A stretch of 64,000 nucleotides of DNA from positions 62,001 through 126,000 of the forward strand of contig JALMLS010000450.1 of NCBI GenBank assembly GCA_038496445.1. Reading direction: 5' to 3'. Origin of the DNA: Trichosphaerium sp. ATCC 40318 (Eukaryota > Protista > Tubulinea). The position numbers were made by a program, and so were the translations under genes. Position 1 is the first letter of the stretch; each line of letters begins with the position of its first letter. The notes under the pieces are model-generated. The model had not been told where the DNA came from. It saw only the letters and a list, made by a program, of their open reading frames with translations, and searched no databases. This document shows, piece after piece, positions 13,861-44,665 of the stretch.

Positions 13861-13890
13861 TTGGTGTCAGTCTTTAAAGTTGACACGCGC
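13861..13890 (+). promoter_or_regulatory. Conserved upstream motif of the secreted family, GGT(G/A)nnAGTCTTTA..TGACACGCGC
   Basis: Same motif about 100 bp upstream of the ATG in C (28367-28393) and D (32322-32350), and partially in B (23949-23970). Confidence 0.65.
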
Positions 13891-13997: not shown

Positions 13998-16713
13998 ATG
14001 AGTTTTATAGTCCTAGCAATGTTTATGATTACTATTGGAGCAGTACAGGCCCAACTCTCGTTGAACTCAAATCGCTTTTCTGATTTTCAAGAGGACATAG
14101 TTGTTACAGGTAATGCTACTGTGCGTTACAGTGGAAGATTTTATGTGAACACTTCATTGGCAACTTATGGCGAGATCCGGTCGGTGAGTGCTGGTTTTGG
14201 ACAAGAATATTTGCCGGGATCTATAAGCTGTTCCGTTAGCTCGAACACATTCATCATGAACGCATACGGCGCAGATAAATCAGAATGCAATGTTAAGTTC
14301 TTCGCAAACATATCTGACGATGAGACAATTTCAGCTGTTACTGAAGGTGCTGATGTTGGTACGCGTATTATTTCTTGTAAATCACGTGCGATTGTAATTT
14401 TATCAAGGTTATGTACTCTTAAAAACTATCAACGAGGATCAAAACCTTATTGTCGGTGTTGGAGTACAGGGAGCAGGAATTGGAGCCTTGAAGATTTTTT
14501 CGTTCGACAATGACACAATTGATTCATCGAGATTCAGTCGTCTACCATATACAGAGTCGCAATTACCAGCCCTATCAGATGTCAGACATATACAGTTTTA
14601 TACTAAAACGTTCTCGCTCTCTGCTGGTATTACAATCGAAGATATTTGTTTCGTTCCTGTAATCATTTGCGAGCACAGGTTCAGCAATACCACTGCTAAT
14701 ATAGGTACTACTGCACTTGTTTCGTAGTTTTTTCTAATCTTTATAAAGGCGATATTGTGCACGTGAATCTAGAATGTTTGAACTATGTAAATGATCCAAA
14801 TGACGAAGATGTTATTGTAACTATTGACTTTGGTATTCCCAAAACCCTTGGTGCCGTAATTGAATTTTCTCGGAACTGCACTATTGTAAGACAATTTGTT
14901 TCTGGGCAGAGTTGAGCTAATTTGTTTTCAGGATGCTTTTTGCCTTGATAATTGTGAAACGAACAATATGTGCCAAACTGGAATTTGTAATTCTCTTGGT
15001 AAGGACATAACAATTTGTTAACGAACTACTAACTCATTTGGCTTCATTAGGTACGTGTGAATACAATGATACTTCGCACTTGTGTACAGACAATAGTACT
15101 TGTGCAAACACAAATTGTGATCCTGACTATGGTGTACGTCCTTGTTTCCTTTCTATCAGTATCATCAGCTGACTCACAGCATAGTGCGTTACTACACCTG
15201 TTGAGTGTACATCTCCTGATCCATGTGTCGAATCAGAGTGTGTTGAAGATCAAGGATGTGTCTCGGTAAATGTGACTTCATCAACGTGTAGAGATAGAGC
15301 ACCAGAATCAACAAGAAATGAGTGCTGGGATCACTTCTGTGATGGTGGATGCAAACGAACAAGAAAAGATTGCTCTGGAACAAACAAATGTAACATCTAC
15401 ACATGCGACCCTGAATAGGATGTGTCTCTGAACCTCGCAATTGTGATAAAGGTGACCCATGTACAGTATATTCATGTGATCGTACGTTATTACCAGTATT
15501 ATCAATCTTATCTTTGTAAGCTCTGTTGGGTTGTATGGGACATCCAAAGAACTGTGATGATGGTTTGGTCTGTACCGAAGACACATGCAATGCCTCAGAC
15601 GGTGTGTGTGTATTTACACCCAGAAATTGTACAGCTTGCACGAGCACTATTATTGTTAATCGTGAAATTAATTGTGACGTCCTTTTCATTCCTGAGATGG
15701 AGGTACATTCAACAATCAAGATAAAGTAGTCCTTTAGTTTAACTCGTTCTGACAAGGCGAATAAGTGTCTATCTACATTCTGTAATGTCTCAGGAACAAG
15801 CAATATTCCTACAAACAACTGTGTACTGGATACAAGTCTACCCATTGAATGTAACTCGTACGATCTTTGTCAACCACAACAAACTTATCTAATCACCCTT
15901 GCTTTAGAAACAACAAGTGTATTCTCGATACTTGCAACATACTCACAGGTGACTGTGAACATACTCCTGTTGTTTGTGATAGCAACAACAACAACAGTTG
16001 TATAGTTGACACATGTGATCCTTTGATTGGATGTCAAACAGAGAACCTTATTTGTGAGAAAAGAAGTGAATGTGAAACTGCAACATGTGATCCGTAAGTA
16101 CCTAACTATCAACAATACATAGAGCTAAAGATATATTTAGAGCATCAGGATGCGTATTTGAAGAAATAAGCTGTGACGGAAATGATAAATGTCTTTTGTA
16201 TTCTTGTGATGACTCTTTTGGATGTCAAAACAGAACAAAGTGTATTCCTCCAAATGATTGTTTTGAAGCTGTTTGCGATCCACTCATTGGTGACTGCGTA
16301 TTCATAGACATTTGCCATAATACGTATGAATGAGTAAACTAATACTCAATCCTGACATCTTTATAGGACTCAAGGAGTTCTGTTGAACAACATCACAATG
16401 CCAAGCAATTCATCGTTTACTTGTGACTTTTCATTTGTTGTACAAAGTATGAACATCTTTCGTCTTCCTACTGTAGCTATTAACAACCATCACTTCAGAT
16501 TATGGTGTTTATCATCTCTCAGCAACAACCATTGACGAAAGTAACGGACTTAGGAGCAGATCTGGAAACGCTCCAATCCTTGAGTAAGTGTAGAATACAA
16601 ACTCATGCGCTGGTTCTAATAGTTGAAACTATAGAGACAAATGTATCATTCCCCAGAAGACTGAATTTATAGTGAACCATCCTCAAGAACATACGGAACG
16701 AAAAGCAACCTAA
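13998..16713 (+). pseudogene. Paralog A of the secreted modular family with Dicty_CTDC-like Cys-rich repeats; 1-bp frameshift
   Basis: Signal peptide, RFSDF, CEHRFS, repeats such as CDDGLVCTEDTC and CIVDTCDPLIGC. Relative to paralog D it lacks one T (CCTGAATAG vs CCTGTAATAG), giving TAG at 15416-15418; this could be a sequencing error. Confidence 0.7.
15117..16325. repeat. Inverted repeat with about 29885-31083 (CTDC array, introns included), interrupted by a divergent segment at about 15598-15756
   Basis: Reverse-complement near identity, also visible as near-identical ORFs 15867+/30114- and 15885-/30096+. Confidence 0.9.
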
Positions 16714-16846
16714 ATGTTGTAAAAATGTAAGCATTCTAAACGAAGTAAATAACATTATAAAGTAATATCTAATTTCCTTCGGCGGACTGGAACTGTGCAG
16801 TGTAGTTTAATTTTTGTTTATTGGGTATGTCAACGGAAATCTACCA

Positions 16847-18531
16847 CTATAGATCATACCAGTATGTAGGATTTGTACATGAGGAACTTGAAAAACTGTT
16901 TTTGTTTGATAAGCTTGAACTGCTAGATGTTTGTGAGGAACTTGCTGAAGAGCTCAAAGAAGAACTTGCAGAACTTGAAGAGCTTGATAAAGAACTTGCA
17001 GAAGAACCAGAAGAACTTGAAGGGCAAGATGATAAAAACATTGAGCTTGAGCTTGATGAACTTGCTGAAGAGTTTGAAGAGCTGGAAGAAGATAATGAGT
17101 GGAGTGCATAGCTGAGATTATGGTATGGTAAAAACTTTGTCTGTCTATATTTGCTATCCATCAGTTGACCTTTATACAATCTCTGTGGCTTGCAATTACG
17201 CTTTGGAAACTGTTGAATAAAGTCTTTATGTGTATCCAAGAAGTTAACAGCGTCAAAAACGAAGGGAATCTATACAGTTACAAGCTAAGTTAGCATTTGG
17301 ATAAAACAAAAAAAATTTCAGGTACTTTTCCTAGGTTAACCTCACATCGATCAAAGGCTACATGAAGCTCTATTGTTGGTATGTATATTTTATGATTATT
17401 GATTACAATGTTGCCAAGTTCAAGTAGTTTTCCATTGATTGTCCATATTGATACACCATTCCAAAATACTCCACAGCCTAAAATATTGTTAGTTTTTTAG
17501 TTGGTATTGTGTTAGCTACCAATAACATCCTTGTGCTTTAACTTCTTTACAAATGTCTGAAATGAACTTATTCGGGACGGTTTTTTACAACCAACAAGAC
17601 AATTCTCCATTTGTTTACCATTGTGTTTGTGAAAGCCGATCGAAACACTACTGCTGTAATTTCTTTAAAAAACAAGAAGCTAAAGGGAAATAACATACCT
17701 TTTAATTAGAGCATGCTCAAAGTACTTGACTTCAAAGTATCCAAGCATACACTGCATATCCTTCAATTGGTATGACATCCACGACTTCTTGAGTTGAACG
17801 CTCTACAAACAAAGATAAGAATTTTTTAAGAAACAAATTGAAGCAGCAAGTTTGCAGTACTACCTTGTACGATTTATCTGCGGTATGTGTGAGCTCTGTG
17901 TATGAAGGAAATGACTTAATATGCAAGTTCTTACTCCTCTTTGATCGATTCCATCCTCCACCATTGCGCTTTTTTGAAGATTCAAATTTGGTCACAGAAT
18001 CTTGTACTGAATTAGTTCAATGAATAAATAAAAAATGAAAATCTTTTTGTTAAGAGGTAGTTTTGGCATTAGGAATATTGTTTGAGATGATTCACGTTGG
18101 TACATACTAAGCATTCTGTTAATGGATCTCCAATCTGCTTTTCTACTGTTGGTAACTTTGTATAATGGTAGTATGTACTTGAACTCTCTAAAACAGCGCA
18201 TGCGATCTTTAAAAGATGTACTCAGCTCCTAAATTTGATTTTATTAGTGTAAATGCGCCTAAACTAACGAGCGCACTTGGTAGTAGTACCGGCATGTTTC
18301 CATAAGAGATAAAAAGCCAATTGAATCTAAATTCAAAGCTATTTTCTCTAAGAGCTCCTAAATCGCCATCATTAATTACTGTTTACCCATTAATATATTT
18401 AAACAACGATTTGATGAACTGAAACGTTAACGTGCGTTTGGAATTGAAAGAAACTCGCAATCGTAATCATAATCGTGCTCATCTTTAACTTGTATGGTTT
18501 TATTCTTCAAAAGCTTTAGCAACGGTTTCAT
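16847..18531 (-). CDS. Multi-exon unknown protein with poly-Ser C-terminal tract; possible N-terminal F-box
   Basis: Open exons bounded by GT..AG (e.g. GCGVFWNGVSIWTING..., IPFVFDAVNFLDTHK...SSSS). A GC donor at 18435 would give FLSIPNELLEKIALNLD; 5' splicing is ambiguous. Confidence 0.55.
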
Positions 18532-18796
18532 GTGGGTTTTTTGTTTGAAATAGTTCCTGTACTTTAACTGAACTCAACTTTTTCGGGTCTCGTTTAGAGC
18601 AAATTGCACGTCATAGTGGCATTTAAGCTTTTAGCTGCCTTCAATCTGTTAAACACGTGCGCAAAGTCTAGGGCAGCACACTCTGAGTTCCTTCTGACAA
18701 AACTTATATTTTTTTGGCAAACAAGTCTTTATTATGTTGTAATGTGTAGCCTGAACTAAAACTCATTTTGTATAATGGAAGATGTTTGAGTGTATT

Positions 18797-20431
18797 CTAC
18801 TTTGGCCTAGTAATATTATTAACGCCTGAACATGATTTTATAACTACTGTTTCGTACTCTCTAAAGTCACGTGTTTGAACTGGTTTGTTATCGAGAATTT
18901 TCTCAATTTTATCAATAACGCTTGTTGTAAGCTTATCTATAACTTCCAAAGACTTCATATTCTCAGCTACTTGAGATGCTCTGCTTGCTCCAGTCAAAAC
19001 AGAAGTCACTCTTGGGTTCTTAGCGCACTTGAAATAAAATCAGTTAAAAGAACAAGTTACACTTATATTAAGTGCTGTGAGTGTCTTACCCATGCTATGG
19101 CTAATTGCGCTTGAGTGCACTCAAGCTCTGATGCAATTGAAGCAAGTTTGCGAGATTTCTCTTGAATTTTTTCAAAAGATTTTTCCTCAAGACCATTCAT
19201 CCCTTGACCTCCTTTTAATTCCTTCAAAAGCCATGCTTTATTAGAAAACTTCAATCGACAATCATCAGGTATACCATCATTATATTTACCGGTCAATAAA
19301 CCACTATGTAAAACAAGCTTAGTACGAAGGTTGTAGCAGAAAAAAAAAACCAATGATGCAAGGTAAAACTGTAGATTTGCAAAGTTATGTCTTTTGTTTT
19401 TAACAGGAGTAGTACCTTGCCAAAGGCGACCAAATTGTAAGACCCAAACCTGGGTCGTTATACAATGGGTTGTATTCTTTCTCAACACGTGTACGTGTTA
19501 GCATATTATACTAAAATAAAGTTATTAATCACGTGACATTTGTCTAACCAAAACACTTTTTAAAAAGAAGCAATTATTCGTTATTGAGTGCGCTATGCAT
19601 ACCTGAGGTTGTTCAACGATAGGTGGTATCAAACCAAGGCTTTTTGATACTGTCACAGCTTCTTGAATTTGCTGAGCGCTCCATTCAGATGTACCCCAGT
19701 AAAAAGTTTGTCCTTTATGAATAAGGTGGTTCATGGCTCTTACTGTTTCTTCTACAACAGTATTTAGACTAACAAATGGTGTGTAACTAATTAAATACCT
19801 ATTGGAGTCCTTACATCCGGTCTATGGCAAAATACAATGTCGACATAAGGCATCTACGTTTGGTTAAAAACGAGTTTAAATAGTTTTGCTTTGTCGCTGA
19901 TTTTTTCTCCTTAAACAGTACCTGAAGACGCTTTAATGATTTCTCCATTCCCTCTATAATGTGTTTTCGTGATAGACCCTTATCATTAGGTCCTTGGCCT
20001 CCCCAAAAGATCTAAAATCCAAAAAAGTTACAAACTTTAGTACAAAAAAACCGTTTCTACCTTTGTTGTCACAACAAGGTCTGAGCGGCGCCAACCGGCT
20101 TGCTTTATTACTTTACCCATGATTTCTTCGCCTTTGCCCGCCTAGGATAGGTTATAATGGATTTTAGAGTTCAAGGAAGTATCTTTTTAACAGTTTGGAT
20201 ACCACATACCCCATACGATTCAGAGTTATCCCAACAGTTAACTCCAGCGTCGTAAGCTGTCTTCATGCATTCTAGAGCGACATTTTCGCCAACTTGCTCT
20301 GAGTACGTTACCCAAGCGCCCAATCCAAGTACGGATAACCGTAAACCACTTAAAGATACATAAACATCAAACAAAACATATAATATGTCAAAATTTTGTG
20401 TGTACGTTTTACCCATGTATCTGTATTCCAT
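18797..20431 (-). CDS. KCNAB: Voltage-gated K+ channel beta-subunit-like aldo-keto reductase (AKR6)
   Basis: [79 protein letters not shown]. Confidence 0.92.
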
Positions 20432-20698
20432 TCTAGCTAGATACTGTATTTGTTGTGGCGAAGTGTCAACGAATTCGTTTTTTGACCTTGCTTAATCACA
20501 ATACTACAACTTAACTGCCTTATAAATACGCCGGATCTCTGCTGTAGGACAACCTTTGAGAATATTTCTTATTACTTTGGTTGAGCAATAAGAAAACTCG
20601 AGCATGTTGGGAAAATAAGCACATGACTTTGTTAGCATTACCATAACGAATAAATGTGCAATGAGTTGTACAAATTCGAACCATTGTTTATTGCTATT

Positions 20699-21145
20699 CT
20701 ACCAGTACTCATTCTGCTGATTTGCTCTATTACATTTACCTTTTGCACACGCTTCACAACGTTCAGAATCGTGGGGAGGAGTATGTTTTTGGTCCCTGTG
20801 CTCTTGGGCGAAAGGTCCTTCTTCAATTCTTGTTATTATCCTTTCAGCAACACGAACTAACTCATCATCATTTATCCACTTTGGAGACTCATACTTTCCA
20901 TTACAACGTCTACATTTTTGTCCAAACACAGTCACATGGAAAATGATATTTCTTGTACTCTTTCGCCATTGAATCTGAGCTTTAGCTAGCGCAGACGTCC
21001 AGCGTCTTCGACATCTTTTACAGGTAAATCGGGCCTTGAAACTAGTTATGTATTCATCTGAGAATCCGGTCTCTTTCACTGTATATTGGAAATTGTATTC
21101 ACTTTCAGTAGCAATAATTTCATCCTTCAACTTAGGTGCTGCCAT
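20699..21145 (-). CDS. zf-3CxxC zinc-binding domain protein (RTP/ZAR1-type domain), intronless
   Basis: RFTCKRCRRRWTS, FGQKCRRC, PPHDSERCEACAKGKC. Confidence 0.88.
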   Translation of the reverse strand: MAAPKLKDEIIATESEYNFQYTVKETGFSDEYITSFKARFTCKRCRRRWTSALAKAQIQWRKSTRNIIFHVTVFGQKCRRCNGKYESPKWINDDELVRVAERIITRIEEGPFAQEHRDQKHTPPHDSERCEACAKGKCNRANQQNEYW

Positions 21146-21499
21146 CCTCTAAGAGACTTTTCTTAACATCTTTACGTTAAGTTAAGTAGCAGTCTTGTTG
21201 GACGAGCAAAGGTAATCATTACGCCTGCTGTGTGATGCTAAACTCTTTGAATGTAGTGAATGCTTCACTGTACAATTTTCTTCCGTTATGCTCTTTGTTA
21301 TCTGGGGTAGATTATCATAAAGAGATCTACCTCTAGGAATGAGGCCTATAGCAAATCATCCTGTATTCTTAAAAGTAACCCGTTCCACTAAATAACAGCA
21401 TTGCGAAAATTGTTGCGCACAAGTGCTCTTGTAAGCAGATGCACTAATACAATTTGGTAAGCTAATTAAATTCTGTGATTAAGGTTAGGGTGCAATATA

Positions 21500-22245
21500 C
21501 TTTATTACAAGATAGGTATTACAAGTCGGAAATACAGTCACCAATGCGTGCTTTAAAGTCATTCTGATATCCTTCTTTGATAAATGGTGTTGGAAATCTA
21601 CCACTACAATACACGTAAGTAAGTTGTTAATAAATAAATAAGGTAACCATACATGACAGAATATGAACCATCGTTCTCAAGCTTTACTCTGAGTGTATTA
21701 CTTCCTGAATCTCTCAACACATGTATTGCTCCCTATCCGAAAAAAATAAGAAATGAGAAATGTTTCTGATTGTCAATAAGTACCCTGTAGATGGCAACAC
21801 CTGTCTGTACATCACGTAGTTTTAATTGACTATTTGATAAAGTTGTCACATCTCTTTGTTAAGCAATTAGAACTGACAAACAAAAACTATAAAAGAAAGG
21901 TCATACGTGATTGTAAGATGAAGTGAAGCGATATCTTGAACAATTCTATCTTTATGAAGTACTTCACCTCCCTTCAAAGATCCAATTATTGATACTGTCT
22001 GTTCTGTACTATCAAACATGATACTCATGTACATACACGATAGAGTGATTGGAAGCTATTTAAAATAAATAACGGTATGAGGTTCAACATCACTTACGTT
22101 TCCTCCTGTGAAACCTTCAAATCTCAAACAATAATCATCATTGAACTTATTGTTGGCAACATTCATCAGTTTGTATGTTCCTGAAGGGAATCCGTGTTGA
22201 AGACTGAAATCAAAACATCCAACACTTGGTGGATCAGTGCTATTT
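21500..22245. repeat. Direct repeat copy 1 (C-terminal module with introns); further copies at about 26180-26925 and 28975-29617
   Basis: Near-identical sequence by eye, introns included. Confidence 0.9.
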
Positions 22246-23849
22246 GAAGACGATGGATTTGGTGTTGGAGATGAGGGCATGAATGGAAATGGTGGCATAG
22301 ATGGTAGTGAATGAGATGGAGGCGAAGGTGAGAATGGGACTGGAGAGATTTGAGGTGGTGGTTGTGTTGTTACAGGCTGTATTTGGCTTGGCTGTGTTGG
22401 AGCCAATGGTTGAGCAAACGGCGGTTTTTGAGTCGGAGGGGAAGGCATGACTGGTACTGCTGGTGTAAAAGGTGGCGTTGGTGTCGGTTGAGTCGGAGTA
22501 GAAGGTGCCTTAGTAGGCGAGATAGGAGGTTGAGTTGTAGGAACCAAAGTAGGTGGTGTTGGCGAGAAATTGTTTACAATAATTTCAGCTTGTTGAGGAA
22601 TAAGACATTCGTCTCTATTTGATAAAGTGATAAGTACGATCACATACATCTAAACAATTGTCGTACTCTAATATAGGTGCGTTTCCTGATCTACTCCTGA
22701 CACCATTGGCTGTATCAAGAACATCCGCGGATAGAAGGAATACTCCAGTATCTGAATTGAATGTGAGCACTTCTACAATTAGAAAGTTTTAGTACTTACT
22801 CTGTGCTACAAATGAAAAGTTGCAACTAAACGATGAATGCTGTGGCATGGTTATATTTAGGTTAACTCCTTGTTGAGGTGAGTTTGTTTCGCAGTTGTCA
22901 CCACATTGCAAAAACATCTCGTCCTATGAAAAGAGTCAATGTAACTTAGTTGAATGAGCTAGTACACTTACAGAGCAGCTTCGAGAAGACTCAATAACTT
23001 CTCCAAGACTTTCAGGTAGATTAAACTCGATAAGTGTGGGGTAAAAAATACTTGTGTAGGGACTATCCTTCTTACAAGTTAACGTGACGTTTACAACTTC
23101 ACCTAAACGCAAAAAACTTTAACACGTGTTAAGACATGTGGTGCTTATTCTTACCAATATGATTAACAGAGTTTGTACTGAAAGTGTGTTCACAAATAAT
23201 AGAAGGGACGTAACAAATATCTTCTATGGATATTCTTGCATCAGGTGATAAAGTATCAATTGAAAACGATAGTCGCCTAACATTTTCAAGTTCAGCTCTA
23301 TCTTGAGATTGTAGATATAACCAACTTGTTCTTGAAGTAAAAGACCCCGAGAAAAAACCACTCCGTGTAAGTCCATTTACGCCAACATTAATGATAGTAC
23401 TACCTTCTCCTTGTCTTGTTTTTAAGAGTATATAGCCTATTCGCACAATGAATACAATGCTTGATATATGACTATGGCACTTAGTACTTACTTGCACCTG
23501 ATGTTGGTCCTACAAAAGCCACAGGAGGCGCCACATCTTGACCATTTACACCAGTGTATTCGACAACACAGGATCCGTTTGCACCGCCTCTTTGATGTAA
23601 TGTGAATGACATAGAACCAACCGAACAAATAAGCTCGTTTCCGGAATAGTACAATGCTGTAACATTATGTTCGTCGCCGAAGGAATATCCTGAAGAAATA
23701 TCTCCTATGGCTGAAAAAACAGGTTCTGATTCGGTAGCTACGTAGCTAAAAGTACCCCAAAAATCAGAAAAGCGAGTCGTAGGTAACGTAGTTTGGGCTT
23801 GGACACTGATCATGATGACTCCAAGGAATACTAGGAGTATGAAACGCAT
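21519..23849 (-). CDS. Paralog B of the secreted modular family (no CTDC array; long Pro/Thr linker; shared C-terminal domain)
   Basis: MRFILL signal peptide, RFSDF, IEDICYVPSIICEHTFS, GNAPILE, Pro-rich linker, YKLMNVANNKFNDDYCLRFEG...GYQNDFKARIGDCISDL*. Confidence 0.8.
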
Positions 23850-24948
23850 ATTTTGTGAGATACGTTGCATGTTATTAGAGATGCTTTGGATTGTGTTAAG
23901 CGTTGAAAACTGTGAGTTTTTTGCCAGTCAACAGTTCTAGTAAAACGGCAAGTTAAAGACTGATACCAAACATTAATTTCAAAAAACAGCCATTAACATT
24001 GCTTATTAAATTTCAACGCGAACAGAGTGATAAGCTTCTTTTCGTGTAAAAAAGAAGTAGTACTTTTTTTATACTGTTCCGCGAATTGGTTCACGTGATA
24101 AGTAATTTTATTGAAACGAACTGTGCGGCACAAAATATGTACAAGCTTGGAGTTGAGCATGAACTTTATCTTTCTTTGTCCCTTTAGGACGTGGCATTGT
24201 CAAAATACCTGAAAATTATCGATCTCAGAACTGAATCCGCGAACAAAGCAAAAAGTCACATAATACTATGTTCGACCATAGAATTATTATCAATTGTTAT
24301 CAAATAATGACATTTACAAGGGAGAAATCAACTTGCGATAAAGGTAAATCTGTTTTTATGTATTTGATTTATTACAAGAGTTTCGGTCCATTTACACTGC
24401 TACAACTTTACAAAATAAAATTTACAATTGAGATGTCTTATTGCAAGGCCCCTTGCCTATTCTTTTGTTGGTAGTCATCGCCTGTTGTTGAAGGTGGATG
24501 TATTGTAATGTTCTGTCTTCTCATCCTTTCGTTCGTCGAACAAAATTTGTCAATTCGATTGTTGCTTTGTTAACTTGCTACATTCCTTTCAAAGTGTGTG
24601 GAGATTTGGAAATGTGTGGATTCAAAATTACTATAAACGATTAGGCTTGCTAGTCTTTCTAGGATATCAAGTGGCTTCCATTGTTATCGTTTTCGAGCAC
24701 GTTGTAATTTTGAAAGTAGAATTCGTTTTAGTGGATTGCAGGGAACTTTCTTCAACAGATTTTATTGTCCGCTTCAGTCAAGTAAGTCAACCCGTTATTT
24801 TGCCAGTTATTTTTCGCTCTGGAAGCACTTTATTTGTTGTAGTATCCATTGGAGCACTTTTTGCGAGAAAAATAAATGACGAAATAACTAGTTGACTGAA
24901 ACGGACAATAACAAAATTGACTCGTTTTTCCTTACTTTTATAAACAAT

Positions 24949-26061
24949 ATGAGTGAAGGCAACTGTTGTCCTACTGACATAAAACCAATCACTTCATCAA
25001 AATACAAACCATCTGGTCACTTTATTGATGTTGAAGGCTTAAAAGTCTATGAAACCGGTAAACAATGTAATAAAGCAATAATAATAGGATACGATATATT
25101 CGGGTACACAACAAGGAGACTAGCGCTTTGTGCGGATATTGTGAACAACTTTATCATATCACGTGGTTTTTGGGTTTAACACGTTTTCACCACGTGGTAG
25201 CTGCTACGAGTGAAACTTGATGAAAAACTTTTCGCAAGAAAATGTTTAAACTAACCTACATCGCAGGATGCACCCTAATACACAACAAGTATGTGATATA
25301 CTAGCAGCTGGAGGTTATTATGTTGTTATGCCAGACTTTTTTAAAGGAAATCCATGGCCTCTAGATGGATTTCCTCCAAAGGAATGGTCAGTACTTATGA
25401 AATGGCTGGAAGAGTCTGGAACTTGGGAAGTTATACAACCAGACTTTAAAAAGGTAAAACAAATTCACGTTTCGTTGTGATGATAATTGCGAGACCTTAG
25501 GTTGTTTCTTTCTTGAAAGAAAAAGGCGTAACTCAAATGGCTTTTTATGGTTTCTGTTGGGGTGTACTCATGGCACTACACGCTTCCGCTACTGGTTTGT
25601 TTAAGGTAGTTTAATTTTGTTTTGAGTCAGATATTATTGTGCACACAGTGATGTTAGCTCCATAATATTAGCACTAAGTTATTAACCTTCTTCGCTTTGA
25701 TTAGTAAGATTTTAAACACTTTTTTAGGTATGCGGTGGTGCTCACCCAGCTATCTTATGTACTGCAGAACTCATGTCGAAAGTTAAATCGCCGATTGTTT
25801 TTTTGCCTTCAAAGGACGAACAACAGTTTGAAGAGCTCCAGAAAGCAATGAAGGAATCTGCTTATGGTCCCAAGTGCCATTATCAGCGCTTTGATGACAT
25901 GCACCATGGATGGTGCTCTGCACGTGCCGACTTTACAAACGAGTTGAATGTAAAGAGGTACCAATGTGATACCTCCGTTTAATTTTGCTTTTTCTTATTG
26001 TTGTAGGACACATGAAGCCTTGGGGATTCTCCTTTACCACTGTAGGAAGAATATGGTTTAA
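24949..26061 (+). CDS. Dienelactone hydrolase-family alpha/beta hydrolase
   Basis: CCP, YDIFG, VVMPDFF, GFCWG nucleophile motif, AHP, HHGWCSARAD. Confidence 0.9.
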
Positions 26062-26199
26062 ACCACTTAATTATGTCGCTATTGATTTAATCCATTTTAT
26101 TCATCCTGTCGCGTTCAAAAATAATAAAGCATCAAAAGGTTTATTACAATATTGAGCTAGTATAGGTTGGTAATATACTACTTTATTACAAGATAGGTA

Positions 26200-28268
26200 T
26201 TACAAGTCGGTAATACAGTCACCGATACGTGCTTTAAAGTCATTCTGATATCCCTCTTTGATAAATGGTGTTGGAAATCTACCACTACAATACACGTAAG
26301 TAAGCTGTTAATAAATAAATAAGTATTTCGTACATGACAGAATATGAACCATCGTTCTCAAGCTTTACTCTGAGTGTATTACTTCCTGAATCTCTCAACA
26401 CATGTATCGCACCCTATCCGAAAAAAATAAGAAATGAGAAATGTTTCTGATTGCACCCTGTAGATAGCAACACCTGTCTGTACATCACGTAGTTTTAATT
26501 GACTATTTGATAAAGTTGTCACATCTCTTTGTTAAGCAATTAGAACTGACAAACAAAAACTATAAAAGAAAGGTCATACGTGATTGTAAGATGAAGTGAA
26601 GCGATATCTTGAACAAGTCTATCTTTATGAAGTACTTCACCTCCCTTCAAAGATCCAATTATTGATACTGTCTGTTCTGTACTATCAAACATGATACTCA
26701 TGTACATACACGATAGAGTGATTGGAAGCTATTTAAAATAAATAACGGTATGAGGTTCTGTATCAACATCACTTACGTTTCCTCCTGTGAAACCTTCAAA
26801 TCTCAAACAAAAATCATCATTGAACTTATTGTTGGCAACATTCATCAGTTTGTATGTTCCTGAAGGGAATCCGCCTTGAAGACTGAACTCAAAACATCCA
26901 ACACTTGGTGGATCAGTTCTATTTGAAGGAGAAGGTTGAGATGTAGTCGGAGGATCAGTAGTATTCACAAACGGTAAGACAAGGATTGTTGCTTCCTCTG
27001 GAATGATATATATCTCTAAAGCATAAGTGAGTATCATACCCATTAATAAAAGGCGTGTGAACATACTCAAGTATTGGAGAATTTCCTGATCTACTTCTAC
27101 TGCCCAAAATGCCATCTCTGATAGTCGCTGAGAGTGAATAAGAGCCAGTATCTAAAACGTTGTAAATATAAACGTACATCGGAGAAGAAACATGTACGTT
27201 GAGCAACAAACGAAAAACTACAAGTAAATGATGAGTTGCTTGGCATTGTTACATTTTGAAATACGCCTTCTTGAGGTGACCTAAATTTAGAAAAAAGTGA
27301 GAAATGTGTTGTCTTCAGCTTTCCTCACATGTTATCATTACAAGTATCATTCAAAGAACAGCCACCAATGACTTGAGTGTCAGTACACATGCGAGATGAC
27401 TCGATGACTTGACCGAGACTTTGAGGTATTTCAAAATCAACAGCTACATAAACATCTTCAGCATTTGGTTCATTTACATAGTTTAAACATTCCAAAGTCA
27501 CGTGTACGATATCACCTTGTAAAAGTATAAGTTCGTACTGATCAGGAAGCATGACGTCAATAGAAAGGTTCTAACAGCTTACCTTGAACAACAGTAGTGT
27601 TGCTGAATCTATGTTCACAAACGATTGTAAACACCAAACAGATATCTTCAATTATGATACTCGCATCGTCCGAACGAACATACACTGAAAAAATTAACTC
27701 TTGTATTCTTGAGAGAACACTGTCCACTATCAGTATCCTACTAAATCTTGATGTATCAATAGTATCATTGTAAATCTCAATGCCCCAAGAATAATACTCA
27801 TCATTGGTTCGTATGCCAGCACGTAAACCAACTCTTCCTTCTTCACCACTAGTTTTAAATACCAAATAAGCTGATTCAAATTTATATTAGCATGTGATTA
27901 ATTTTATAAGTATACTTACGAACAGCTCCTCCAGGTGAAACGGCATCAGTAATATTAAAGAACGTGTATTGAACATTGCAATATCCTGGTACATCAGAAT
28001 GAACTAGCCTGAATGTGCCAGAGCTAACGGAACAACTAATAAACCCACCAGTAGGTAGAAGCGGAAATGAATATGACGCCCTAATTGTACGTCTATCTCC
28101 GAAAGATCCAGAAGGAGTTGTTGTTAGCTCAGTAGCAAACATCAACGAATCATTTGCAACAACAACTGCATCCTCTGAGAAATCAGAAAAGCGATTTGTG
28201 TTCAACGTCAGTTGGGCTTGTACTTTAACAATAATAAGAGTTATAATAGCCAGGAATATAAAACGCAT
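26200..28268 (-). CDS. Paralog C of the secreted modular family (no CTDC array; short linker; C-terminal domain)
   Basis: MRFIFL, RFSDF, IEDICLVFTIVCEHRFS, GDIVHVTLECLNYVNEP, GNSPILE, C-terminal domain ending ARIGDCITDL*. Confidence 0.8.
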
Positions 28269-28958
28269 TAATTTTACAAGATGTGTTGTTTGTTGTGTAG
28301 TTAGTTTTTGATTTGTAATCAGATTTCTGACTCCCTGTTGTTAAGCTTGTTACTTATGTGAACATGGCGCGTGTCAAGTAAAGACTACCACCTAAACCGA
28401 ACCAGTTCTCTTTATCAGCCATACGTAGATCATGATTATAAGAGAATAATGCGTAAACGAATCTCCTTACATGTCCACATTTTATTTCAGCGAGTACACG
28501 TGATTTAACACATTTTTTTTGAAACAAAACTGTGTAGCACAAGGCATGATACGAGAGACGCTTTAAAGTACAACACGTACCCCGTAGAAATAATCAAAGA
28601 CAGAACCGAATCTAAAACAACTTTTTACACCCACCTTTTCATTGTGTTAGCGAAATACGGAGACATGGAAATTCTGTGGAACACAATTACAAATAAAGTT
28701 TTGTCATCTATTTGTTCCTCAATAAATTCTTAGTATAAATAGCCAGTACATGTTGCACCTGCAATTCTTAACACAACACGTGACAAGAATAAAGAACAAA
28801 ACACTCAAGTTTAAGCTTACTTCACAGTCAGTCTGTGTAGCAACTTGCACTCATAGCAAGCACGTTTTGAAATATCGATCAACAGTTACTTTTGCAACAA
28901 AACATAACGGAGAACAGTTTATTTCGCTCCAAACAAAGTTTATTGAATATTTAAGTGG

Positions 28959-31900
28959 CTAGTACACAGCAGATATACAGTCACCAATGCGCGCTTTAAA
29001 GTCATTCTGATATCCTTCTTTGTTGAATGGTGTTGGAAATCTACCACTACAATACACGTAAGTAAGCTGTTAATAAATAAATAAGTATTTCGTACATGAC
29101 AGAATATGAACCATCGTTCTCAAGCTTTATTCTGAGTGTATTACTTCCTGAATCTCTCAACACATGTATTGCACCCTATCCGAAAAAAATAAGAAATGAG
29201 AAATGTTACTGATTGTCAATAAGTACCCTGTAGATAGCGACACCTGTCTGTAAATCACGTAATTTTAATTGACTATTTGATAAAGTTGTCACATCTCTTT
29301 GTTAAGCGATTAGAATCGGTAAAACAAAATAATAAGAAGGGTCATACGTGATTGTAAGATGAAGTGAAGCGATATCTTGAACAAGTCTATCTTTATGAAG
29401 TACTTCGCCTCCCTTCAAAGATCCAATTATTGATATTGTCTGTTCTGTACTATCAAACATGATACTCATGTACATACACGATAGAGTGATTGGAAGCTAT
29501 TTAAAATAAATAACGGTATGAGCTTCAACATCACTTACGTTTCCTCCTGTGAAACCTTCAAATCTCAAACAATAATCATCATTGAACTTATTGTTGGCAA
29601 CATTCATCAGTTTGTATGAACATACTCAAGTATTGGAGAATTTCCTGATCTACTCCAACTGCCATCATTTCCATCTCTGATAGTCGCTGAGAGTGAATAA
29701 GAGCCAGTATCTAGAAAAATTGTTATTAATAGTTGTAAAATACGATAAGGATTGTGTACTTTGAGCAACAAACGAAAAACTACAAGTAAATGATGAATTG
29801 CTTGGCATTGTTACATTTTGAAATACGCCTTCTTGAGGTGACCTAAATATAGAAGTTCATAGAGAGCTCACTCGCTATTTTATGTACGTATTATCACAAA
29901 TGTCTTTGAATACGCAGTCACCAATGAGTGGATCGCAAACAGCTTCAAAACAATCATTTGGAGGAATACACTTTGTTCTGTTTTGACATCCAAAAGAGTC
30001 ATCACAAGAATACAAAAGACATTTATCATTTCCATCACAGCTTATTTCTTCAAATACGCATCCTGATTCTCTAAATATATCTTTAGCTCTATGTATTGTT
30101 GATAGTTAGGTACTTACGGATCACATGTTGCAGTTTCACATTCACTTCTTTTCTCACAAATAAGGTTCTCTGTTTGGCATCCAATCAAAGGATCACATGT
30201 ACCCACTATACAACTGTTGTTGTTGTTATCACAAACAACAGGAGTATGTTCACAGTCACCTGTGAGTATGTTGCAAGTATCGAGAATACACTTGTTGTTT
30301 CTAAAGCAAGGGTGATTAGATAAGTTTGTGGTTGACAAAGATCGTACGAGTTACATTCAATGGGTAGACTTGTATCCAGTACACAGTTGTTTGTAGGAAT
30401 ATTGCTTGTTCCTGATACATTACAGAATGTAGATAGACACTTATTCGCGTTCTATAGGAAATGTTAATTGGTAAGTACTATGTACTTGTACTTACAATCT
30501 CAGCAGCATATACGTTGTCACAGTTTACTTCAGCACCAGTTCCGACAATCTGACAAAAAATACAAGGAGTATTTACGTTCTCACAAATTCCAGTCATGGC
30601 GTTACAAGTGTCTTCAGTACAAGCTAAACCATCATCACAGTTCTTTGGATGCTCCATACAACCCAATAGAGCTGATAAAACATAAGTATTGAAATATAAT
30701 CCATAAGAAATAACGTACGATCGCATGAATATATTGTACATGGGTCACCTTTATCACAATTGCGAGGTTCAGAGACACATCCTATTACAGGGTCGCATGT
30801 GTAGATGTTACATTTGTTTGTTCCAGAGCAATCTTTTCTTGTTCGTTTGCATCCACCATCACAGAAGTGATCCCAGCACTCATTTCTTGTTGATTCTGGT
30901 GCTCTATCTCTACACGTTGATGAAGTCACATTTACCGAGACACATCCTTGATCTTCAACACACTCTGATTCGACACATGGATCAGGAGATGTACACTCAA
31001 CAGGTGAGGTAACGCACTATGTGGTAAATTAGCTGATGATAGTAATACAAGGAAACAAGGACGTACACCATAGTCAGGATCACAAAAAGCGTTTGTACAA
31101 GTACTATTGTTTGAACACAAGTGCGAAATATCCTTGTATTCACATTGACCTCCATTACAAAAGTTAGACAATGTCTTTCTTTGATCGCTTACCAAGAGAA
31201 TTACAAGTTCCAGTTTGACACTTGTTGCTTGTTTCACAGTTGTTAAAGCATCCAATAAGTGACTGAGTCTGTAACAATAAACATTAACACGTGTTTATAA
31301 GGCAAAGAATACTTACAGTGCACATGCGAGATGAGTCGATGACTTGTCCGAGACTTTGAGGTATTTCAAAATCAACAGCTACATAAACATCTTCAGCATT
31401 TGGTTCATTTACATAGTTCAAACATTCCAAAGTCACGTGCACAATATCACCTTGTAGTAAAGTAAGTTCGAAATACGAAAGAACAGGTAGCGTTAAAAAC
31501 AAGAACAGAAAGGTCAGCGCATCTTACCTTGAACAACAGAATTGCTACTGAATTTGTGTTCACAAACAACTGTAAACACAAAACAAATATCTTGTATAAT
31601 AATCCTTGCATCATCCGTAATACCTTGCACTGTAAACGATAGCTCTTGGATTTTCGTAAGACTATTTGATACAGGTATCCTAAGAATTCTTGAACCAGCT
31701 ATGGGGGGATTTTCTAGTTCGACACTCTTTGTGAAATCATCATCCTCTGTTTGTACTCTAACACTGACTTGAACTTCGCCTTCTTCGTCTTTAGTCTTCA
31801 AGACCAAATAACCTATACAAGAGATTTTATCAGAACACGTGATAGTTGGCCAAGTAAGAGGTGTACCAACAGATGTTCCATGCGTTCCAGCTGAGATGTC

Positions 31901-32224
31901 TTCAATAGCGGAAACATTTGAAAATAGGAAGTCAACTGAACACGATCCTTGTGTTCCATACGATCGATATCTCATGAACCCCGGGCTAATAGAACATGTA
32001 AGTTGGCTGTCAGAATCACCAATTTGATAAGAAGCTTGGAGTCTGCGTATATCGCCAAATGTTGCTGGAGAAGTGGTTGTTTCATCAGTAACAACTATTC
32101 TTGAAGAATTGGCTACTACAATTGTTTCTTCTTGAAAATCAGAAAACCGATTTGTATTCAACGTGAGCTGTGCTTGTACTGCTCCAATTATTATAGCAAG
32201 GATAAATAATACTAAAAACCGCAT
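28959..32224 (-). CDS. Paralog D of the secreted modular family (CTDC array; linker deleted, C-terminal domain probably out of frame)
   Basis: MRFLVL, RFSDF, CEHKFS, CTDC repeats nearly identical to paralog A; the junction near 29620 reads PILEYVHTN*; C-terminal exons are still present down to 28959. Confidence 0.75.
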
Positions 32225-33979
32225 TATCTATGAGATGTGGTGTACTTGGTGATCAGTTTTTGATTGTTCTATGGTATTGAAAACTCACTTTTTTCTAGCT
32301 TGTAATGCTTCTCTGAAAAGAGCGCGTGTCAGTGTAAAGACTACCACCAAAATCAAGACCTGTTGTTGTACCAGTAGGTCGTTGACCGTGAGTACAAGCG
32401 AATAGTACATAACTATTCATAAAAGAAGTTCTGGCGTGTCCACATTTTATCTAAGCGAGTAATACCTTCAGATTTAAAGCGGCATTTACTATGAATAAGA
32501 ACGAATGCTTATGGCACTTCGATTCTAAAAGAAGTTCGTATGGATGCACGCTTTGACTATTCATGTGATTTAACACATTTATTGAATCAAAACTGTGCTG
32601 CACAAGGGTGGAATAAGAACGACCTTTTTTTTATCTCACTGGTTCTAGTACCGTTGTAACGTATTACCTAATGTCGTTGAATTCCGGCTGGACTTGTAGT
32701 TCGGTAAATAAAATTTCAATGTTGGCTGTACAGCCAAAGTCTAGAGGCGTAACAACGGCTAGAGGCAATTACGCAATGACCACAATGTACTCGGAAAAGT
32801 TTTAGGTTTTTCGGTTGTTTTATTCTGTCTTTATAAAACAAAGGTCTCAGGCTTTGTGGCCAAGCCGTCAAGCCAAGAGATAGGTTCTACTCCTATCTGT
32901 GTTGTTTTTTGTAGGACCCCTTTGGAGTATAGGGACCTAACTTAAAAGACAATGGACGAGATACAATGTGCTTCTATGACCGTATCATGTGCTAGCCACA
33001 AATAACAGTGTGCATACCTTGTGAGGAATTGTTTTCGCCACCTTTTGGTGTAACTGTAAGCTAGACGTTATTAACCACGCAAGTCTTAGAGCTCAAGCGA
33101 AAACAGTTGTGAATCCCATCGCAAACCACGTGGCTAAAAAATCACAACTCTTTATTATTTATCAGTATTGATGGCTTGGTGGCGTTTACAAAGCCTACGG
33201 CAGTGTACATTGTTTTATACGAGATTTTCAGTTACAACCCGTTGGCGCTGTGAGAGCGCTATTGGTAAGCGTAGTTAGGCGCACTGAGCATTTGCGCGTA
33301 CCGTCGGTTTTTACGTTGTAAAAGACAGAGAACATGTTTGATTCTATTCGCGTTACGTTTATCTAGCGTAATACGTTGCGCTTAACCATTGTACCGTTTA
33401 TCATTTGCTTTTAGCTACCGGATGACTTTTTGTCAAGCTTGAACGTACACTTCTGTGGTTTGATTGTACCGTGTACTGTGTCCGTAGGTACACTGCCTAT
33501 CGTACTGCCTATATAATGGTTTGAGAGGTGAGCTGACATATGTGTTAGCGCTGGGTATTGTTGATTGTCAGTCAAATCATAGTCGTTAGATAAAATTCAG
33601 TTTATCTCTCATCATTGTAGCGCTCCAGAAGATGTTACAACGTGCGTATTAAACAAGAATTGTTGTTAGATAAACAATTTTTCTACAAAATAAGGTTCCA
33701 AAATCCAGTCGAGCGGATTCTAATACCTAATCACATATCACAATAACCATGCCCACAAATGGACGATATTTTGTAAGCGAAGGTTGGGTTCTTGTCCCAA
33801 GCGAAGCGACGGGTTCAACCCAAAGCGAACACCGCTCTGTATTAGCTTGCATTAGCTGTTCCATGCTCAAATTGTGCTGAACAAAACTGGGAAGAAAGAA
33901 TCTACTCGAGTGGATTTGCTCCATTTTGTGGAAATGTCATCCGAATAATTGTTAACTGACCTTACCATTAGGGTCTATT

Positions 33980-35588
33980 ATGGTTAGTGGACACCCGAGG
34001 ATATACAAGAGATTTATAAAGCCCAAAGTGGCGGCACGACAACTACGACACAAACATCCAATAAGAGAGACTAAAGTACTTCCGTTTTACGGTTCATTAC
34101 AGTGTGCATACGTCCATAACTCAAGAACGATGATGATATGCTCTCCTACGCGATTTTACTCGACTGACTACGCCGCGGGTAGTTTTACATCAGATATCAA
34201 AGAGGTTAGACCTCGGTTTTATACGTTTTTGCCCTTTGATTGTATTTCGAAGAAATCACGTGTTCTGCACTTTTTGTCCACCTTTTCTGTAAAAACAGCC
34301 AGACTCTGCTACTATTTTCACCTAAATTGGGAATATGTCACGTGTTTTTACTAAACGAATTTTTTTGTTTTAGGAGGTTTACAAAAACACCACAAAAGTT
34401 TACAAACGGCAGTACTTGAGCGGAAAGAATAAAGGTTTACTCGAAAAGTTTTTTGAAAATGGTCAAGTCGGACTCCAATGCTACGTTGATGATCAAAATA
34501 GAATACAAGGGGAACACAAGAGGTGGCGTGAAAACGGCGATCTTCATAGAAAAGGTTATTGTATTGACAACAAGAGAGAAGGTGTTGAATTTTGGTATGA
34601 GAGCGGCAAACTACATCAGCAAATTTCTTTCAAAAATGATAAAAAAGAAGGTGAATACAAGTCATGGCATAAGAATGGCACTTTGAGTCATCTCGGCTTT
34701 CACAAGAATGATGTGAAAGAAGGTGAATGGAACGAGTGGTATGATAATGGTGAGCCTTATCAACAATTATCTTATGTAAATGGCAAGAAAGAAGGAGAAT
34801 TCAAGCAGTGGTACATAAGTGGACAACTAAACATACAGTGTTATTTCAAGGATGACGCAAAACATGGTGTACAAAAAGAATGGAATGAAAAAGGTCAATT
34901 AAGTCACCAAAGCGCTTTCAAAAACGGCGAAGCATGTGAAGCAAAGTGGTATGAAAATGGACAATTGAGCTCCCACTTTTTATACAACAATGGGGTTAAG
35001 GTACAAGGTAAAACGTGGTATGCAAACGGAAATTTAAAACAGCTCCAAAGTTATAAGAATGATAAGCTTGAAGGCGAAGTAAAAGAATTCTATGATAATG
35101 GTAAACCTCATCACCATTGTTTTTTTAAAAATGATAAGAAAGAAGGTGAATACAAGCAATGGTATGCAAATGGACACTTAAACACACATTGCTATTTCAA
35201 AAATGATAAAAAACATGGTGTTTCCAACCAAATGCATGACAATGGTCAAGTAAGCGTACAATTCCATTTCAAAGACGGCATAAAAGAAGGAGAGTTCAAA
35301 CAATGGTACAAAGGTGGCCAACTATTGGGACAATGTAATTACAAAAATGACAAACAAGAGGGTGAAGCAAAAGAGTGGCATGAAAATGGCCAGTTGAGAT
35401 TACTAAGTTATTTCAAAGATGGCAAGCAACAAGGTGAATACAAAGAGTGGTATGATAATGGCCAGATAAAACTATATTTTGACAAGCAAGAAGGTGATAG
35501 AATAGTAAAACAAAGACGACAAAATAGCCATAAAAGGGGTCATATATACAAACAAGCAATAGTAGTTAGGCAAAGTACTAAAAAATAA
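33980..35588 (+). CDS. MORN-variant (YwqK-like) repeat protein with putative mitochondrial presequence
   Basis: Exon 33980-34204 is spliced by a phase-0 intron (34205-34373, GTTAGA..TAG) in frame to about 14 repeats of KNDKKEGEYKQWYxNGQL. Confidence 0.8.
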
Positions 35589-43636: not shown

Positions 43637-44665
43637 TCAACGCTGAAGCAATTCTCCGTTTTCATTCCAGACTGATATCCCACCATTTACTATTCCATCA
43701 AGTAAAACATAGCTTTCCTTCAAGAGCCCATTTTTGTGCCATTCCGTTTTTTCACCATTTTGTATACCATCAATCCACATACTAGTGGACTTTAGTTGTC
43801 CATTGTCATACCACTCTTTCCCTTTCCCAGTTTGTTTACCATCAATCCATGTACCGGAGGATTTGAGCTGTCCATTCATATACCAAAATCTGCATGCCCC
43901 ATTTTTCTTATCAGCAAGCCATATGCTACAGTACTCAACTTGTCCATTCTCATACCATCCCTTCGCTTCACCGGTTTGCTTGTCATTAAGCCATATACTT
44001 TCAGACTTAAGTTGTCCATTCTCATACCAATCTTTTGTTGCACCATTTTGAAGACCATCAGCCCACATTGTCTCTGCCTCAACCTTACCATTCTCGAACC
44101 ATTCTGTATGTTTACCTATTGGCTTTCCATCAACCCAATTACAATGTACCTTGAGTGAACCATTTTCATTCCACCTGTGGTATTCACCATTTTGTTTACC
44201 ATTAAGAAACATGCAATGGACTTTAAGCTGTCCATTTGAGTGCCAATATTTGTATTCTCCATTTCGTATACCATCAGACATAGTTGTTAGTTTTATAAGT
44301 TGTCCATTCTCTCCCCAAACTTTGAATAAACCATTTTTTTTATTATCCGCCCACATGCCATGGCAGTAAAGTTTTCCACACTTACGCCATGTTTTAGAAT
44401 CACCATTTAGTTTCCCACCTCTTGAATAGTGGAAATGAGCCTTTACCTCTCCGGTTTTGTACCATTGAATCCATGGTCCTTTCTTGTTTAATGCTTCATC
44501 AAAATGTGTATCGAGTGCTGCTCTTTTTGACAATGTATGGAGCTTTGTAAACGCTTCAATGTGGGATGCAGATATCCGCGTTAGAATTTCACATGGGAGA
44601 TCCAGCAAGGTCACAGACGGCATGTTCTGTTTTTTTAATTGGAGTTTTTTACTAGCCGAAGACAT
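43637..44665 (-). CDS. Intronless F-box-like protein with MORN-variant repeats
   Basis: LLDLPCEILTRI followed by about 11 repeats of W.DGKQNG..KEWYENGQLK. Confidence 0.85.
   Translation of the reverse strand: MSSASKKLQLKKQNMPSVTLLDLPCEILTRISASHIEAFTKLHTLSKRAALDTHFDEALNKKGPWIQWYKTGEVKAHFHYSRGGKLNGDSKTWRKCGKLYCHGMWADNKKNGLFKVWGENGQLIKLTTMSDGIRNGEYKYWHSNGQLKVHCMFLNGKQNGEYHRWNENGSLKVHCNWVDGKPIGKHTEWFENGKVEAETMWADGLQNGATKDWYENGQLKSESIWLNDKQTGEAKGWYENGQVEYCSIWLADKKNGACRFWYMNGQLKSSGTWIDGKQTGKGKEWYDNGQLKSTSMWIDGIQNGEKTEWHKNGLLKESYVLLDGIVNGGISVWNENGELLQR

Follow-up and report, generated by a model that had tools for sequence, protein, structure and literature searches.

Fungal adhesins of the FLO, ALS and EPA families have an N-terminal sugar-binding beta-sandwich, a variable, glycosylated stalk rich in Ser, Thr and Pro and a C-terminal part, and they acquire new forms through recombination between paralogs and within repeats. 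Dicty_CTDC repeats are present in Dictyostelia and Physarum, with none in Acanthamoeba, and they mark the dictyostelid matrix proteins ecmA, ecmB, pdiA and psiA (PMC4931340, Table 4). A 64,000-nucleotide (nt) window of the Trichosphaerium sp. ATCC 40318 genome (contig JALMLS010000450.1, 62,001-126,000, forward strand; G000:C71:62001-126000) contains four related genes, designated A to D, of which A and D carry an array of such repeats. The presence of Dicty_CTDC repeats fits Amoebozoa. The assembly comprises 70 Mb in 642 contigs with ~37% G+C and short introns; all positions given for A-D are positions in the window. The four genes form a mosaic in which segments of near-identity lie within anciently diverged sequence. 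With good confidence, the cluster is read as four paralogs for secreted matrix, wall or surface proteins that were shaped by module loss and repeated interlocus gene conversion.

Gene models and module layout

Gene models were built by hand from six-frame translations, comparison of the paralogs and GT-AG sites. Dynamic-programming exon chaining over-called and under-called introns and served as a draft only; each junction was set by eye against the paralogs. Comparison of the window with itself by blastn gave a repeat map of related stretches. All four genes begin with a hydrophobic N-terminal leader ending VQA/Q, followed by an N-terminal domain (N-domain) with the signature RFSDF ... IxDIC..xxCEHxFS and a second domain with the signature GDIVHV..LEC ... 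MPSNSSF.C.FSFV ... SGN.PILE. A preliminary description of this DNA had assigned these three parts to A-D, and both the self-blastn map and the curated models reproduce them. The introns are 39-77 nt long with GTAAGT, GTACG and GTATG donors. Because intron positions and phases are conserved with GT-AG sites, and the frames are open despite synonymous divergence (dS) of at least 1 and a nonsynonymous to synonymous ratio (dN/dS) of 0.3-0.6, A-D are real intron-rich paralogs.

Gene A (13998-16589, + strand) has 12 exons in a GT-AG model checked at each exon. Its modules are, in order, the leader, the N-domain, the first half of the second domain, a Dicty_CTDC array and the second half of the second domain; the linker and the C-terminal domain are absent from the hand-built model. 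The TAA stop directly follows ..SGNAPILE and results from read-through of a conserved donor (GA/GTAAGT). Gene B (23849-21519, - strand; 10 exons, 626 amino acids (aa)) encodes the leader, the N-domain, a second domain with the array reduced to the remnant CGDNCETN, a ~130-aa Pro/Thr linker and a ~190-aa C-terminal domain. B is the sole copy among A-D as assembled with an unbroken frame across all the modules it carries. Gene C (28268-26200, - strand; 10 exons) has a B-like layout with a short linker (~25 aa) and the array remnant TQVIGGC..SLNDTCNDN. Gene D (32224-29596, - strand; 12 exons, ~689 aa, ending ..SPILEYVHTN-stop) encodes the leader, the N-domain and a second domain split by a 368-aa array with 56 Cys; the Pro/Thr linker is absent. 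Five exon pieces of a C-terminal domain persist in D at 29618-28962 (- strand), with their own frame open and their splice sites intact. The linker lengths agree with the preliminary description (long in B, short in C, absent in A and D), as does the splitting of the second domain by the array in A and D. The array had been called missing from B and C, which keep the short remnants. The C-terminal domain is confined to B, C and D as proposed, with the qualification that the D copy lacks its first ~45 codons and is out of frame.

The array between the second-domain halves of A and D is ~365 aa long with 56 Cys. The spacing of these 56 cysteines in 364-368 aa is 7-6-5-6, which corresponds to ~14 units of 24 residues with four cysteines each. 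One A repeat (15550-15621) scores 28.2 bits against Dicty_CTDC (PF00526; cut-off 27), and the D array exons, scanned singly, score 22-23 bits, below the cut-off.

In B, C and D the seeming stop past ..VIYFK is intronic, and the C-terminal domain spans four further small exons. The exon after the ..VIYFK intron is conserved in paralogs on contigs C8 and C33, and the C8 paralog matches the later exons too. An untranslated region or a repeat element was considered for the shared 3' block of B, C and D and ruled out: the block occurs genome-wide only at these three genes and encodes exons conserved in the C8 and C33 paralogs.

Three observations concern individual introns. Intron 1 of D (31866-31813, - strand) is 54 nt long, in frame and stop-free, and is contained in the long first open frame of D. 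Its retention would place 18 extra residues in an N-domain loop; the homologous intron in A, B and C breaks the frame. The frame change in the N-domain of A is this intron 1, and a frameshift was ruled out. C has undergone a precise loss of the intron located after ..SRMCT in the other three genes (27380-27400, - strand), with one extra codon at the exon fusion.

Divergence changes at sharp borders along the genes

Values of dS and dN/dS were calculated by the Nei-Gojobori method, and the frame breaks of A and C were bridged with N/X for alignment purposes only. In the N-domain, dS is 1.0-2.0 in all six pairs, amino-acid identity is 35-46% and dN/dS is 0.3-0.6; the 5' ends of A-D give weak self-blastn matches of 67-75%. 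The second domain has a dS of at least 0.8 in all pairs except C/D. Self-blastn also detected A/D similarity of 81% (14746-16607 versus 31453-29605), B/C similarity of 95% (21498-22249 versus 26179-26928) and B/D similarity of 95% (21529-22177 versus 28972-29618). Three C/D matches were found, at 94% (26213-26856 versus 28975-29618), 88% (27055-27292 versus 29614-29854) and 81% (27381-27707 versus 31316-31652).

The A/D alignment consists of blocks with 55%, 68%, 95.7%, 60%, 98.2% and 64.5% identity, in order. Tract I (A 15092-15490, + strand; D 31108-30710) is 95.7% identical with intron 5 included and has a dS of 0.043, and its core (A 15195-15465) is identical to D except for a 1-nt indel. 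Tract II (A 15771-16323, + strand; D 30434-29888) is 98.2% identical with introns 8 and 9 included, has a dS of 0.058 and contains two in-frame 3-nt indels. The array parts between and beside the tracts have dS values of 0.39-1.37. A and D share an identical run of up to 219 nt; when the difference positions were shuffled 2000 times, the maximum was 41 nt. Sharp-edged near-identity inside diverged paralogs, beyond chance expectation, is the mark of interlocus gene conversion, and the A/D tracts display it. The preliminary description had equated A with D over the whole array; this is correct within the two tracts and incorrect elsewhere, where identity is 60-68%.

The C/D second-domain exchange joins C 27055-27640 (- strand) with D 29614-29854 and 31317-31585, and its exons are 92-98% identical. 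The dS values for the two second-domain halves are 0.20 and 0.12 (98% and 93% identity), compared to 1.0 for the C/D N-domain, and the exon at 27382-27515 is 96% identical to 31317-31450. The B/C/D 3' block (B 21498-22249, C 26179-26928 and D 28972-29618; - strand) is ~650-750 bp long, 94-95% identical and contains the linker end, five C-terminal exons, four introns and ~20-30 nt beyond the stop. Divergence in this block is 3.5-4.7% in exons and 4.3-9.8% in introns, each of the three pairs, also those that involve D, has a dN/dS of 0.09-0.20, and the private differences are clustered (P = 0.004). The introns within the A/D tracts and the 3' block are 90-100% identical. Over the C-terminal exons B and C are 96.5% identical, although no copy is more remote than B in the N-domain. 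The earlier statement that the nearest partner changes by segment is borne out by the C/D exon at 96% and by the 3' block at 94-95% with its introns.

An N-domain tree rooted with distant paralogs has the topology (B,(A,(C,D))), with tips of 0.74 (C) and 0.94 (D) substitutions per site; the corresponding tips of the second-domain tree are 0.034 and 0.02. No topological incongruence was found between the N-domain and second-domain trees, both of which pair C with D. The 3' block exists in three copies only, and the topology test is inapplicable to it. Congruence of module trees had been put forward as a check on the mosaic; the two topologies agree, and the mosaic is seen in the branch lengths instead. 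Congruent trees are only partly informative here because the mosaic shows as a change of age and not of topology.

At least three age classes of exchange are present, with dS of ~0.05, 0.06-0.09 and 0.12-0.20 against a background of at least 0.8, and divergence shifts 5- to 30-fold at sharp borders. The signature of interlocus conversion extends to synonymous sites and introns, with dS of 0.04-0.20 in the tracts versus at least 0.8-1 elsewhere. Since synonymous and intronic divergence jump too, differing selective constraint cannot explain the mosaic, and a selection-only explanation was ruled out by dS and intron identity. These results establish the mosaic itself and its recency relative to the duplications. 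Sharp shifts at synonymous sites and introns also uphold the earlier proposal of recombination or gene conversion between the paralogs.

Module history and origin of the mosaic

The genes on contigs C8 (L006) and C103 (L005) have their first two second-domain exons adjacent, with one phase-0 intron between them and no Cys array; therefore, the array is taken as an insertion at that intron in the A-D ancestor. This common ancestor would have received the Dicty_CTDC array, with introns of its own, between second-domain exons 1 and 2. Many other CTDC loci exist in the genome, and the closest array is 46% identical, so no recent array donor is evident. B keeps the first intron and the opening motif of the array, CGDNCETN, on which SPQQGV follows immediately. 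In C the first array intron is gone, TQVIGGC from the array start is joined to SLNDTCNDN from the array end, and the last array intron is kept. The different breakpoints in B and C point to two independent array deletions, both of which would have been in frame. The deletions in the cluster would be of two types, in-frame between cysteine repeats and, in one case, microhomology-type.

A stretch of 198 bp present in C (26857-27054) is deleted in D; with it D has lost the intron that follows ..ILE, the linker and ~45 codons from the beginning of the C-terminal domain. The C-terminal exon pieces of D are out of frame with exon 12. Enumeration of GT..AG pairs identified a rescue in which the conserved donor and a TTTGAG acceptor 62 nt downstream give an in-frame join. 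A has the deletion junction of D: the donor is followed in A by ATACAAACTCATG and in D and C by ATACAAACTGATG of the YKLM codons. A/D identity around the shared junction is only ~65%, and the A/D deletion is therefore old. In the A/D lineage the 198-bp deletion would thus have eliminated the linker together with the first part of the C-terminal domain. From this comparison, the D downstream exons, which are 95% identical to B and C, must either have been recently overwritten from a B/C-type copy or have been kept by selection via an alternative splice.

Two further copies have frame problems. A has a 1-nt deletion compared to D at 15413-15414 (+ strand; A ..CCCTG-AATAGG, D ..CCCTGTAATAGG) that results in a premature ..CDPE-stop, and the remainder of A is open in frame. 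This lesion sits in a 271-nt stretch of the A/D alignment that is otherwise identical to D, and it could be recent real damage or an assembly error. In C the (AT)n run at the start of exon 6 (27003-27015, - strand) is 2 nt shorter than in B. Use of the conserved splice sites in C shifts the frame to ..ILEDIYHSRG..CEYY-stop, 20 codons past ..ILE, and the C-terminal exons 3' of the break are all open in the proper frame. Among all GT..AG pairs enumerated, an in-frame rescue of C was obtained only with the weak donor GTTCAC.

Ordinary ectopic homologous recombination among clustered paralogs is our best reading and would be the most economical account. Such exchange is textbook behavior of tandem families, and a process of the same type has been put forward for the Dictyostelium tgr family (PMC13648343). 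Following the module losses, tracts of a few hundred bases would have been copied repeatedly among the copies, most simply by interlocus gene conversion. The tracts would be non-reciprocal and ~250-750 bp long, the inverted A/D pair included. The youngest exchange would be A/D in the array (inverted, ~14 kb apart), followed by the B/C/D C-terminal exons and then by the C/D second domain. We infer how the events were ordered and in which direction sequence was transferred and, for the products, a matrix or wall function. The preliminary description went further and proposed an ongoing system that diversifies these proteins, a claim that goes beyond what the analysis shows. No sign of a dedicated diversifying mechanism was found in the cluster: the exchanges homogenize the copies, they spare the variable N-domain (dN/dS 0.3-0.6), and nothing beyond ectopic homologous recombination is suggested.

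Several points weigh against this account. The evidence for the mosaic comes from assembled sequence. Conversion direction and event number are not fixable without an outgroup, and the outside searches found no orthologs or alleles to serve as one. Some blocks could have arisen by partial duplication or unequal crossing-over. The short introns beside the C/D second-domain exons are 52-82% identical in windows, below the exon identity, and purifying selection therefore contributes to the C/D second-domain block. A frame problem exists in three of the four assembled copies, and part of the cluster may therefore be in decay and no longer functional.

It is unlikely that the mosaic arose mainly from partial (segmental) duplications and unequal crossing-over, in which entire 3' or internal pieces of genes were duplicated and fused, and not from non-reciprocal conversion. 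Whole modules (the array, the linker and the C-terminal domain) do differ between copies, C and D are adjacent direct repeats ~700 bp apart, and the 3' block stops ~20-30 nt past the stop in three genes, as a duplication unit might. However, the exchanged tracts are internal and colinear, with old diverged sequence of the same gene on either side. The A/D pair is inverted, and a crossover would invert the interval and not patch it. The presence of at least three tract age classes in one 18-kb cluster also argues for repeated conversion over segmental duplication.

Cassette-type programmed variation, as in variant surface glycoprotein (VSG), pilin and chicken immunoglobulin genes, combines one expression site and silent donors with directed, high-frequency transfer to a variable region. 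In a cassette locus in the present cluster, the full-length gene B would be expressed, and its donors would be the partly disabled copies A, C and D. Segments would be copied among the copies and into B during vegetative growth, and a surface or wall glycoprotein of this free-living amoeba would vary between clones as a result. This arrangement is judged highly improbable, although recent, repeated exchange has occurred between copies and B, which lacks the array, is alone in having an unbroken frame over its modules. The upstream regions bear on this point. The motif AGTCTTTA-N(3-5)-GACACGCGC is located ~105-130 nt 5' of the ATG in A (13869-13890, + strand), C (28367-28386, - strand) and D (32322-32342, - strand). 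These three sites are the only matches in the 70-Mb genome (control, 0), and the region upstream of B has the first half of the motif only (GGTATCAGTCTTTAAC). The specificity of the motif for these three genes speaks for shared transcriptional control of A, C and D, either now or in the recent past. A family-specific promoter motif that is complete in A, C and D and halved in B would suit a cassette locus, and for the Dictyostelium tgr recognition genes there is a published proposal of interlocus conversion that involves a pseudogene copy (PMC13648343). Against a cassette, the most variable part of the proteins, the N-domain, is without exchange, and the lesions are single per copy, recent-looking and may be assembly errors. 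A, C and D retain promoters, splice sites and low dN/dS, unlike silent cassettes, and neither switching machinery nor an expression site is evident.

The least probable explanation is an assembly artefact, with near-identical tracts produced from collapsed or cross-polished paralogs: the assembly is in 642 contigs and two frame breaks lie in or beside highly similar sequence, but the tracts lie in one contig between unique flanks of 55-68% identity that reads would be unable to cross-map over, contain private substitutions and in-frame 3-nt indels, and affect three different gene pairs. Module loss with repeated interlocus gene conversion is retained as the preferred history.

The wider family, its products and known systems

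A-D had been described as a four-member family, and this count was too low. Searches and folding used exon-by-exon or unspliced-frame queries. A single-sequence search with the N-domain returned A-D only within the genome. A profile of seven second exons detected the seven genes and at least 13 weaker matches on other contigs, which are more distant N-domain exons. Three related genes of like layout lie beyond the cluster, on C33 (L004; modeled through the N-domain only), C103 and C8; in the C8 paralog a Pro/Thr linker and a C-terminal domain are present too. The family appears to have at least 20 members, so far in this genome only. The ancestral layout, as kept by the distant paralogs, would consist of the leader, the N-domain, a ~105-aa three-exon second domain, a Pro/Thr linker and a ~190-aa C-terminal domain. 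Outside the genome, phmmer with the D first open frame gave 0 matches among 1.84 billion representatives, the profile gave 0 matches in a 5.8-billion-cluster word index, and a pattern scan of Joint Genome Institute (JGI) metagenome contigs gave 0 confirmed matches. These exon-sized or unspliced outside searches exclude close relatives and can miss distant or longer ones.

Two tandem genes on C28 (L008, G000:C28:36000-44500) have the same leader, N-domain and second domain with a very long Pro/Thr linker. The terminal tail of one is hydrophobic and may serve as a glycosylphosphatidylinositol (GPI) signal or a membrane anchor. More distant N-domain members are also located on C159, C97, C7, C33 and C37, among others. 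The linkers of the distant paralogs are much longer and more regular than that of B; L004 4505-5788 and L006 3256-4389 encode linkers of 300-400 aa composed of near-perfect PTNAPFPPPT-type tandem repeats. Directly 3' of the C8 paralog is an open frame (L006 5230-6276, + strand) rich in G-(S/D)-GDD-C/F-V repeats.

The A-D proteins have 7-17 N-x-S/T sequons and 13-63 cysteines each. To model the N-domain, AlphaFold was run on the first open frame of D with unaltered exon translations aligned in 13 rows. The result is an all-beta structure of 12 strands with a predicted local distance difference test (pLDDT) score of 69 and a predicted template-modeling (pTM) score of 0.60. Leader residues 2-20 form a helix, and the low-confidence residues 103-126 overlap the start of the intron-encoded residues. 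Foldseek and a second aligner matched the model to the jelly rolls of CBM70, CBM61, CBM4, meprin MAM and the Eph ligand-binding domain with Z of 9-10 over 130-140 residues at 3.0-3.5 Å, and no family stands out. The N-domain is thus predicted to be a CBM/MAM-like jelly roll, which is a fold-level lead to a glycan- or ligand-binding module and no more. Weighing against this fold call are a medium-confidence model, an alignment of 13 rows and the inclusion of 18 intron-encoded residues. A protein atlas gave a FlaA lead for the N-domain at 0.84, which is sub-threshold, and Pfam returned no family at E ≤ 0.1 when N-domain pieces from B, C and D were scanned. PA14 was ruled out for the N-domain, since there was no Pfam match and no PA14 structure among the fold matches.

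When the exons of the second and C-terminal domains were scanned against Pfam, nothing usable emerged apart from a weak N_BRCA1_IG match to the second domain (E 0.055). A DUF11/CARDB-type Ig-like repeat was rejected for the second domain because a genome-wide six-frame search gave no PF01345 match at its exons. The preliminary description had spoken of unassigned domains; this still applies to the second and C-terminal domains, and the array and the N-domain now have a Pfam family and a jelly-roll model, respectively. Because of the leader, the N-glycosylation sequons, the Cys-rich Dicty_CTDC array and the mucin-like Pro/Thr linker, the products are probably secreted and heavily glycosylated, with a lectin-like head, and would belong to the matrix, wall or surface. 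On these features, the preliminary assignment to coat, cyst-wall or recognition proteins is plausible. A specific wall or matrix function, suggested by composition and fold, has about an even chance of being correct.

Unrelated frames are interspersed between the family members at 16821-17111 (+), 19063-20431 (-), 20699-21145 (-) and 24892-25179 (+). By eye, candidates in between include a glutamate/leucine-rich acidic frame just after A, an aldo-keto-reductase-like gene, a cysteine-rich CxxC zinc-finger-like protein and a dienelactone-hydrolase-like gene. Self-blastn also revealed internally repetitive stretches at 34596-35465, 43728-44276 and 61209-61745, with 68-88% identity between copies.

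Three processes would coincide within 18 kb: array insertion at an intron, independent module losses and repeated interlocus gene conversion that includes inverted copies. The cluster is a clean, datable example of module change together with conversion, and it leaves the understanding of gene-family evolution unchanged. The family products are candidate components of a cyst wall, sheath or surface coat, as predicted lectin-like and mucin-like secreted proteins. The family-specific promoter motif offers a direct route to when the genes switch on.

The N-domain model superposes on the CBM70, CBM61, CBM4, meprin MAM and Eph jelly rolls at the Z of 9-10 noted above, whereas sequence identity to them is 7-13%. 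The FLO, ALS and EPA adhesins resemble the Trichosphaerium proteins in their layout of head, stalk and C-terminal part and in recombination between paralogs. There is no sequence relationship, however; B is without a hydrophobic GPI-type tail, and the repeats here are disulfide-rich CTDC units. The dictyostelid EcmA/EcmB and PsiA/PdiA proteins (PF00526) are likewise secreted and have long arrays of 24-residue, 4-cysteine repeats, and some Psi-type proteins pair a lectin-like PA14 domain with the array (PMC4931340, Table 4). The array is the body of the dictyostelid proteins, whereas in A and D it is inserted between exons of another domain. EcmA/EcmB-type proteins consist almost entirely of CTDC repeats and are deposited in sheath or stalk tube, but the array makes up approximately half of A and D and is missing in B and C, and the N-domain of A-D, unlike that of Psi-type proteins, is not PA14. 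The likeness to dictyostelid CTDC genes is at the level of the repeat domain. The Dictyostelium tgrB/tgrC genes, an example of interlocus conversion and birth-and-death evolution in a clustered family, differ in belonging to another family, as A-D have no IPT/TIG domains, and the exchanges in A-D lie outside the most variable domain. In both systems, close paralogs with secreted or surface products have sharp patches of near-identity within old divergence, and a damaged copy is involved (PMC13648343).

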